From Laetmonice hystrix (taxonomy: Eukaryota), in contig OZ249440.1 in the NCBI GenBank assembly GCA_965235115.1, positions 18,972,001 to 19,036,000 of the forward strand: 64,000 bases of DNA, in the 5' to 3' direction. The notes below the pieces were generated by a model that was not told where the DNA came from, did no database searches, and was given only the letters and a program-made list of their open reading frames with translations. Positions 12,566 to 15,500 of this stretch are shown piece after piece. Each line of letters opens with the position of its first letter. Positions within the stretch are counted from its first letter, which is position 1. The translations under genes were made by a program, and so were the position numbers.

Positions 12566-12595
12566 CTACCCCAGCATGTGGGAGACTGTCGCACC
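12566..12595 (-). CDS. Ferlin alternative last exon b (GATVSHMLG*)
   Basis: ctctccaccaatcag|GGT GCG ACA GTC TCC CAC ATG CTG GGG TAG; phase 0; resembles exon a and the known ferlin tail; AATAAA on - strand at 11632-11637, 10803-10808, 10724-10729. Confidence 0.65.
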   Translation of the reverse strand, partial: GATVSHMLG

Positions 12596-15500
12596 CTGAT
12601 TGGTGGAGAGACAAATGATACTGTGGAATCCCTACATACGAACATTCTTACGGGTTACTTTATACGAAGTTTATCACTGTTGTTTTCTTATCCATTCCAT
12701 TTTTTTTACAGTGGGAACCATATAGATCTAGATCAGTCTGTAAATCTTCAGTAGATGACAAATATCTCTAGATCAGTCTGTAAATCTTCAGTAAATGACA
12801 AATATCTCTAGATCAGTCTGTAAATCTTCAGGAAATGACAAATATCTCTAGATCAGTCTGTAAATCTTCAGGAAATGACAAATATCTCTAGATCAGTCAG
12901 TAAATCTTCAATAGATGACAAATATCTCTAGATCAGTCTTTAAATCTTCAGTAGATGACAAATATCTCTAGATCAGTCTGTAAATCTTCAGGAAATGACA
13001 AATATCTCTAGATCAGTCTATAAATCTTCAGTAAATGACACATATCTCTAGATCAGTCTGTAAATCTTCAGTAGATGACATATATCTCTAGATCAGTCTG
13101 TAAATCTTCAGTAGATGACAAATATCTACAGATCAGTCTGTAAATCTTCAGTAGATGACAAATATCTCTAGATCAGTCTGTAAATCTTCAGTAGATGACA
13201 AATATCTACAGATCAGTCTATAAATCTTCAGTAGATGACAAATATCTCTAGATCAGTCAGTAAATCTTCAGTAGATGACAAATATCTCTAGATCAGTCTA
13301 TAAATCTTCAGTAGATGACAAATATCTCTAGATCAGTCAGTAAATCTTCAGTAGATGACAAATATCTCTAGATCAGTCTATAAATCGTCAGTAGATGACA
13401 AATATCTCTAGATCAGTCTGTAAATCTTCAGTAGATGACATATATCTCTAGATCAGTCTGTAAATCGTCAGTAGATGACAAATATCTCTAGATCAGTCTG
13501 TAAATCGTCAGTAGATGACAAATATCTCTAGATCAGTCTATAAATCTTCAGGAAATGACAAATATCTCTAGATCAGTCAGTAAATCTTCAGTAGATGACA
13601 AATATCTCTAGATCAGTCAGTAAATCTTCAGTAGATGACAAATATCTCTAGATCAGTCTATAAATCGTCAGTAGATGACATATATCTCTAGATCAGTCTG
13701 TAAATCTTCAGTAGATGACAAATATCTTTAGATCAGTCTATAAATCGTCAGTAGATGACATATATCTCTAGATCAGTCTGTAAATCTTCAGTAGATGACA
13801 AATATCTCTAGATCAGTCTATAAATCTTCAGTAGATGACAAATATCTCTAGATCAGTCTATAAATCGTCAGTAGATGACATATATCTCTAGATCAGTCTA
13901 TAAATCTTCAGTCGATGACACATATCTCTAGATCAGTCTGTAAATCGTCAGTAGATGACATAATATCTAGATCAGTCTGTAAATCGTCAGTAGATGACAT
14001 ATATCGGCTTCTATACCTACTTTCTCGCAGTTTCATCACATCCACTCAGTTCGGACCACCCCCTTTGGTTAAGGGGGGGGGGGGCTACGTTATATCCAAC
14101 ATTTCCTCATCAAAAATCTAAGTGGTATTAATAGTTTACCTGTTGTCAGTAAGTTTAAAATATGGATTCTGCCGATAAGATTGGACAAGAATGCCGTTCC
14201 ATATTTTAAACCGAGAGTAGCGTGAATTAATTTCCAACTTTAAATTTTCAAAACTTTCTAAATATTAAAAAGCATTGGTAAGCCTTTTAAACAAATTCTT
14301 GTTTTCAGGTTCTCGAGTGTCCAAAGCCACCCCTCCCCTGGCATTGTGTAGACCTCACGTGCTGCCCCCATGCGGCCCATGCATAAAAACTCCTCAGAAC
14401 AGTGCACAAGGCCCTCTGGTGCCGGGCGATAAAACTAAAGATCCATTTCCCCAGATGCAAATGGCCATTTGTTCCCGTCTATTCCATATTTCAGATATGC
14501 CACACTGGATTGTGAAAATAACGACAGTAGAGAATTGTGTGTTATTTGATTATTTGAGTAGAGTGAAGAGGAAGGGTTAGGATGAGCCACCTAAATGTGC
14601 TGGTTGGAGTCGGTATCCCGCAAACTAGGAGCCAATCAACTTCCTGACCGAGGCCCCCTGCAAAAACCGTACCGCTCCGTTAGCGTACACGTGGAGAGAT
14701 ATAGATACAAATAAAGGTGATTAGGAAAATCTCGGGAGCATGCAGGATAACTCAATCATAATCCCAATATAACCTCTCGATTACTGTGCAATTATTACTT
14801 CAAGCTGCCTTCTCCTCGGCTTGCCAACATTAGAACTCCAATCATGGCAAATGTTAACTTAATTATAATTATTAGATTTTTTGGACTAATTAATGTAGAG
14901 TATTCTGCTTTAGTAAGTGCGCATACGTGTAGTGTTATATCATATTACATGTATCTGTCTTACGTATTGATATGAAGATAGCGCGTTAATATCATTAATA
15001 GTAAAGACTTAAAAATTGTGGAGACTAACAGATTCAAATAGACGGAAACAATCTCAGAAAATATACACTCAAACAAGATAAAAAAAGGAGAAGTTGAAAG
15101 AAAAATCACCGCACACAATTAAAGCTTATATCCCCCGCTTTATAATCGAATCCGCCGGGATATATGGTAGGCACCCCCCGCAAACCGTTTGTGGCGACAC
15201 CAAGCGGGTCAGGATGTAAGCAAGCCAAGTTCATACGTACAGGAACATTGTAGATGAAGAGGACGATGAAGAGAATGAGTAGGATGACGATGATGCCGCC
15301 GATGAACCACCACTTGTAGTTCTTCCAGATGATATATTTGAGAGTTTTGAAGGGGGATGTAAACCATAAGAAGGAGGTTTCTGGTCGCCTGATCACAACC
15401 AACACAATCTTTCATTAGGACGGTTTTATCACGTTATATAACCTTGTATCATGGAAGATATTTTAGTCACATACCTACCTTATTTAATTATACATAAACA

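Follow-up and report, generated by a model that had tools for sequence, protein, structure and literature searches.

Ferlins such as dysferlin, myoferlin, and otoferlin are tail-anchored calcium sensors that act in membrane repair and exocytosis. The human dysferlin and myoferlin genes (DYSF and MYOF) each have a single exon for the short tail that follows the transmembrane (TM) helix. The C-terminus of otoferlin is variable, since the alternative C-terminal exons 47 and 48 of OTOF swap the whole TM domain, giving a TMD2 form in the brain and a TMD1 form in the cochlea (PMC10394277). The free short luminal tail is needed for otoferlin function, and tagging or extending it impairs the protein (bioRxiv 10.1101/2024.03.20.585901). 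Here, we describe a ferlin gene in a 64,000-nucleotide (nt) stretch of the Laetmonice hystrix genome (assembly GCA_965235115.1, contig OZ249440.1, positions 18,972,001 to 19,036,000), which we call the window and number from its first letter. The TM exon of this gene is followed by two candidate last exons, tail A and tail B, which would change only the residues beyond the membrane. Judging from the DNA, the odds are about even that the last coding exon has in tail B a genuine second copy, kept by selection and used as an alternative. A pair of alternative tail-only ferlin exons was found neither in the literature nor among database isoforms.

The exons of the gene lie on the minus strand of the window. 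The penultimate coding exon (15388-15241) encodes the juxtamembrane segment and the TM helix, is translated as RPETSF...IYNVP, ends in phase 0 with the codons TAC AAT GTT CCT, and matches the Pfam family Ferlin_C (PF16165) with an E-value of 2.5e-11 and a score of 44.2 bits (cutoff 29.4). Directly after it stands the 5' splice site gtacgt (15235-15240), which would be common to both tail choices. Tail A (14625-14657), 584 nt from the donor, has ten codons and a stop, cag/GGG GCC TCG GTC AGG AAG TTG ATT GGC TCC TAG. Tail B (12566-12595), 2,646 nt from the donor, has nine codons for GATVSHMLG and a stop, cag/GGT GCG ACA GTC TCC CAC ATG CTG GGG TAG. Thus each tail is preceded by a CAG/G acceptor, would join in phase 0 to the final proline of the TM exon, and stops after ten or nine codons. 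The region before tail A (14658-14683) carries a ctaac branch-point-like motif, a run of five T, and gcag, and the region before tail B (12596-12620) reads tatcatttgtctctccaccaatcag, with 15 pyrimidines in 20 positions, C at -3, and G at +1. The sequence-only reading had placed two paralogous last exons behind this TM exon. When the minus strand was re-read, its coordinates for the TM exon end and the two CAG/GG acceptors, as well as its peptides, proved exact, and the translation agrees with its description of one basic tail (RK) and one tail with neither lysine nor arginine (K/R).

The likeness of tail B to ferlin tails was measured against a broad sample of ferlin C-termini. When the TM exon was compared by phmmer with 1.84 billion representative proteins, 335 matches were obtained, all with ferlin C-termini. 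The intron after the terminal proline is conserved across ferlins, as ORFs (open reading frames) from genomic contigs of many species read P/V(S/R), i.e., run on into the GT donor. The spliced products end in a conserved tail of 9-12 residues with the pattern G-(A/Y)-x-V-(K/R)-(K/R)-hydrophobic-hydrophobic-G, for example GATVKKLFGT, GASVRRIVGAK, GYTVKKILGA, and GAISHKIVGGP. Tail A is the orthologous canonical form, since the spliced transcript of a relative (metatranscriptome contig P0010) ends in IYSVP/GASVRRIVGAK. For a position-specific profile, 36 ferlin tails were taken from other species, with this genome left out. Tail A scored 19.6 bits and tail B 12.7 bits in this profile, and the best of 1521 other AG-preceded ORFs of 9-16 codons in the window reached 5.6 bits. 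The maximum was 6.5 bits among 4622 AG-preceded short ORFs in 200 kb taken from eight other contigs.

By extrapolation of an exponential tail fit, the chance of 12.7 bits is about 6e-5 per candidate. The region of about 4 kb from the tail A stop to the neighbouring gene holds 81 short-ORF candidates, 35 of them derived from a minisatellite, and about 0.005 chance matches are expected there. When the 1638 short ORFs that follow an AG on either strand of the window were scored directly against tail A, tail B again came first (23 vs. 16 for the next). Its profile score falls inside the range set by bona fide tails of the same genome, such as GAITHSIFG (13.7 bits) and GQVIHRMVG (12.0 bits). In the peptide, G1, a small residue at position 2, V/I at position 4, the hydrophobic pair at positions 7-8, and G9 all fit the pattern. 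With a score so far above the null and so low an expectation, tail B is a true homologue of a ferlin tail exon. The homology of the two tail exons is thus established and fits exon duplication, the origin that had been proposed for them from the shared peptide pattern.

The DNA around tail B retains signs of function. By pyrimidine count, its acceptor, tcatttgtctctccaccaatcag/G, ranks at the 97th percentile among the AGs of the window and ties with the strongest of 21 approximate real acceptors from the window ferlin. The polypyrimidine tract of tail A is weak, with 9 pyrimidines in 20 positions (30th percentile). A stretch of 287 nt that includes tail B occurs once in the 627-Mb assembly, and therefore tail B is not a member of a repeat family. 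Tails A and B are identical at 14 of 27 nt, and tails taken from separate ferlin genes of the genome share 12-18 of 27. Of four conserved codons with fourfold degeneracy, three have a different third base in tails A and B. This divergence, like that of different ferlin paralogues, argues for long-term constraint on tail B. When neutral decay was simulated from three real tails, a score of at least 12.7 bits with no stop was kept in 0.5-0.9% of the simulations if the divergence was set to that observed, and in 3-5% if it was set to d = 0.5. The simulations are suggestive, over only 27 nt, of long-term constraint rather than an old dead copy. An alignment of 160 nt around each exon with MAFFT gave no DNA similarity of the flanks beyond the coding part. 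A recent origin of tail B by ectopic copying from a paralogous tail was also considered and rejected, as tail B shares at most 18 of 27 nt with any tail of the genome and is single-copy.

If tail B is used, the single donor at 15241 would join either the proximal acceptor at 14657, with its weak pyrimidine tract, or the strong distal acceptor at 12595. Two tail-anchored isoforms would result, with the same cytosolic part and TM helix and with differences only in the 9-10 luminal or extracellular residues. The predicted net charge is +2 for tail A and about 0 for tail B, which has no K/R and one titratable histidine. Tail charge shifts tail-anchored proteins between the endoplasmic reticulum, the peroxisome, and the mitochondrion in mammalian cells (PMC5450235), in agreement with the general influence of tail charge on sorting that the sequence-only reading had invoked. 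We infer that tail B is spliced, that its splicing is regulated, and that the charge may act on membrane insertion, sorting, or luminal contacts. The earlier suggestion that the tail switch retargets isoforms is purely inferential, and such retargeting cannot be predicted with confidence because the TM helix of the window ferlin is long and very hydrophobic.

The 3' end may be shared by the two forms. From the tail A stop (14625) to tail B, neither AATAAA nor ATTAAA occurs, a weak argument that is not significant alone because only about 1.3 hexamers are expected in the non-repeat part. Past the two tails, the minus strand first shows ATTAAA, at 12223 and 12179, and then AATAAA, at 11637. In the absence of a canonical hexamer between the exons, both forms may use one 3' end near 12.2 kb, for which the two ATTAAA motifs (12174-12223) are the candidates. 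In that case, the terminal exon would be long, with the tail B acceptor as an alternative distal 3' splice site within it, and tail B would have no poly(A) site of its own. Two TGCATG motifs of the Rbfox type are on the minus strand at 14739-14744 and 14378-14383, the first 87 nt ahead of the tail A acceptor and the second 242 nt beyond the tail A stop, with an extra GCATG at 14373; the window mean is 0.56 per kb. The same motif count found no TGCATG near tail B. These motifs may regulate tail A use, including a regulated skipping of tail A.

Several observations weigh against a maintained and used tail B. Its use requires skipping a functional proximal acceptor. The basic residue at position 5 or 6, present in tail A as RK, is replaced by SH in tail B, although 34 of the 36 reference tails have K/R at one of these positions and 35 of the 36 have K/R somewhere. 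The lack of K/R could mean a distinct isoform or, equally, relaxed constraint. The estimates of divergence and selection are noisy because tail B has only nine codons. Three sequencing runs matched the region 14010-15400, all of them DNA-like and from one sample, and no RNA run was among them. Their contigs over 11400-12726 are DNA unitigs with no spliced joints. Protein searches with the genomic ORF, P0010, and the TM exon joined to tail B found no tail B-like end on the window TM and no pair of isoforms differing in the tail, which says little because of length limits and the sparse sampling of the lineage. Contig breaks, reduced depth, and 30-nt overlaps make it probable that a divergent allele, absent from the alignment, spans 12472-12574 and overlaps the last three codons of tail B.

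Comparison with relatives gave further points of this kind. A scan of JGI metagenomes with the TM exon found 22 loci of 50-89% identity, and those of the window gene's type have the intron and one tail. No second tail was found in the 2.5-3.8 kb of sequence available beyond the first in contig L035 and in the flatworm locus L042. One locus, L037, has a tail exon for GAFVNKFVGT at 1399-1431 and, 988 bp later, a weak second tail-like ORF (2387-2437) encoding GHRSRKVIGHVTTRFL and a stop, which scores only 7.1 bits behind a ttttag acceptor. An AATAAA follows each of the two (2221 and 2576), and the second ORF was not seen in the related contig L035. Other contigs of relatives were too short or had no tail within 2.6 kb (P0003, 506 nt; P0004, 1459 nt; P0151, at most 4851 nt).

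These points give substance to the explanation that tail B is a dead relic of an old duplication of the tail, or of TM plus tail, which stands unspliced in the tail A 3' untranslated region (UTR) or in the spacer. Such a copy may have been in use at some earlier time. The intact look of the exon would then come from its tiny size or from a loss of function that was only recent. No tail B transcript was found, the nearly universal K/R at positions 5-6 is lost, the second tail is absent in L035 and L042, and the local haplotype divergence lies just 3' of the exon and reaches into it. Nor was any remnant of a TM exon belonging to tail B seen from 14624 to 12596, a stretch now occupied by minisatellite. 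However, an old neutral copy should have lost the motif, the frame, or the stop, and the simulations give this degree of preservation a probability of about 0.005-0.05. The acceptor AG, the C at -3, and the 97th-percentile pyrimidine tract are all retained as well. In addition, K/R-less tails with histidine are known on intact full TM-plus-tail exons, namely GAITHSIFG in the fourth terminal exon of the ferlin on contig 6 and GSMTHSIFNS in L021, a metagenome contig of the gutless-worm type. We regard the relic as the main rival and as quite possible, with a substantial though minority probability.

In a second explanation, splicing to tail B would be occasional noise at a low level, with neither distinct function nor regulation. 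A strong distal acceptor behind a weak proximal one can draw some splicing even without selection. Noise leaves unexplained why a ferlin-type motif and its stop were kept at saturating synonymous divergence, and we consider this explanation improbable. The chance likeness of an unrelated AG and short ORF to a ferlin tail, which could be entertained given nine residues and flanks with no DNA similarity, is highly improbable, as tail B ranks first by a wide margin over about 6,100 null candidates, against a regional expectation of about 0.005, and stands on the correct strand, immediately downstream, in the correct phase and behind a strong acceptor.

Terminal exons are duplicated in the other ferlin genes of this genome. 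The TM exon matched only three ferlin loci in the assembly and was single at the window locus. The ferlin on contig 6 (L012, 7303001-7313000) has four tandem terminal exons within 3.4 kb on the minus strand, at about 9210-9386, 8240-8416, 6890-7065, and 6002-6178 of the locus, each with an acceptor of the same phase, a TM segment, a tail of 9-10 amino acids, and a stop. The four tails are GQVIHRMVG, GATVDKMFG, GATVNKMFGT, and GAITHSIFG. Three of them have nine residues and end in glycine, like tail B. The related metagenome contigs L020 and L031 have one such terminal exon each and no array. The otoferlin-like gene on contig 2 (L013, 46798001-46808000) has two tandem terminal TM-plus-tail exons on the plus strand, at 902-1081 and 1901-2080, which are about 86% identical in protein and end in GYTVKKMMGA and GYTVKKIMGA. 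Each of the two likewise has a stop and an acceptor of the same phase. This pair probably arose by a duplication independent of, and more recent than, the vertebrate OTOF exons 47/48. Because the genes on contigs 6 and 2 carry arrays, duplication of C-terminal exons with retention of the copies recurs in the ferlins of this genome, a point in favour of a maintained tail B.

The window gene differs from these two in its exon layout. The TM segment and the tail are in one exon on contigs 6 and 2 and are split by an intron only in the window gene, which alone among the three has a tail-only duplication. A wider proposal, which we hold tentatively and think rather unlikely as a whole, is that all three ferlin genes diversify their membrane-distal end through terminal-exon arrays of four exons, two exons, and two tail-only exons. 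The tail-only pair would then be a natural experiment on the luminal 9-10 residues as a functional determinant, and a dichotomy between basic tails and K/R-less tails with a histidine, possibly pH-titratable, would recur in two genes. Its members are RK vs. SH in the window gene and DK, NK, and HR vs. HS in the contig 6 array.

The remainder of the gene confirms the ferlin assignment. In the window, 27 tblastn segments match the 1934-residue ferlin P0016 with a mean identity of 53%, extending on the minus strand from about 49.4 to 15.3 kb. A C2 domain was matched in the exon 29791-30126 (E-value 9.8e-12, Pfam), and a FerA match in the exon 36217-36528 is below the Pfam cutoff because this exon contains only part of the domain. 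Matches to Pex24p/DysF-like domains in the exons 34396-34689 and 33363-33533 are weak, at 17-19 bits against a cutoff of 26.8. These two exons correspond to residues 799-952 of P0016, which gives the same weak match; in type I ferlins, the DysF domain lies between C2C and C2D. By its domain content, then, the window gene is a ferlin, and it may belong to the DysF-type (type I) ferlins, to which the weak DysF-like match points.

Most of the spacer between tail A and tail B is a 40-bp minisatellite with no strand assignment (12727-14005; 32 copies, 93% matches), of which the sequence-only reading had made no mention. A tail A mRNA would carry it in the 3' UTR, and for the tail B form it is intronic. 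Read in the direction of the gene, every unit has a tttacag and behind it, in phase, a nine-codon ORF (TDLEIFVIY) that ends in a stop. The array thus places about 32 acceptor-like decoys between the real tail exons. A perfect 14-nt inverted repeat, GTTTAAAATATGGA and TCCATATTTTAAAC with a loop of 31 nt, lies at 14153-14211, a part of the tail A transcript that is presumably 3' UTR. This was the only inverted repeat of at least 14 nt within 12300-15400, and the same search found no helix able to mask the tail A or tail B acceptor.

Two further observations concern the surroundings of tail B. An uninterrupted ORF of 596 codons on the plus strand (8261-10051), which the sequence-only reading had listed as a gene for a secreted protein, is convergent with the ferlin 3' end and limits the room for the ferlin 3' UTR. 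The DNA contigs of the three runs are identical to the window over 12566-12595 and have variants nearby, which counts in favour of a maintained tail B. One contig differs by single-nucleotide polymorphisms at 12618 and 12635 and by deletions of 2 nt and 3 nt at 12678 and 12700. The sequenced sample is locally very heterozygous over 12472-12751 of the window.

If tail B is a maintained alternative exon, the gene would be a new, tail-only version of the known theme of alternative C-terminal exons in ferlins. A swap of the tail at a constant TM helix would allow what the tail does to be told apart from what the TM segment does, which OTOF exons 47/48 cannot do. Taken with the arrays of the paralogues, the tail pair would show that ferlins beyond the vertebrates generally diversify their C-terminal anchor. 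An unused tail B would make the finding an ordinary decayed exon duplicate.

The locus resembles described systems in different ways. With tail-anchored sorting it shares the kind of difference that is able to shift the organelle, i.e., the same TM segment with a tail charge of +2 vs. about 0, but the published work concerns mammalian cells and usually higher tail charges (PMC5450235). Its gene structure is that of type I ferlins such as dysferlin and myoferlin, with a phase-0 intron after the TM-terminal proline and a tiny last exon of 10-12 codons. Tails of that group include FP/EYAAMKLVKPFS, and many follow the pattern P/G-x-x-V-K/R-K/R-x-x-G. The way of varying the C-terminus is that of OTOF. 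There, exons 47/48 exchange the TM segment together with the tail, whereas in the window gene the exchange predicted from the DNA would cover only the 9-10 residues after the TM helix. The likeness to OTOF exons 47/48 is closest in the contig 6 and contig 2 genes, in which whole TM-plus-tail exons stand in tandem. What the window gene has in common with OTOF is an anchor region that would be varied by a choice of last coding exons at the 3' end, each of which closes the reading frame with a stop.

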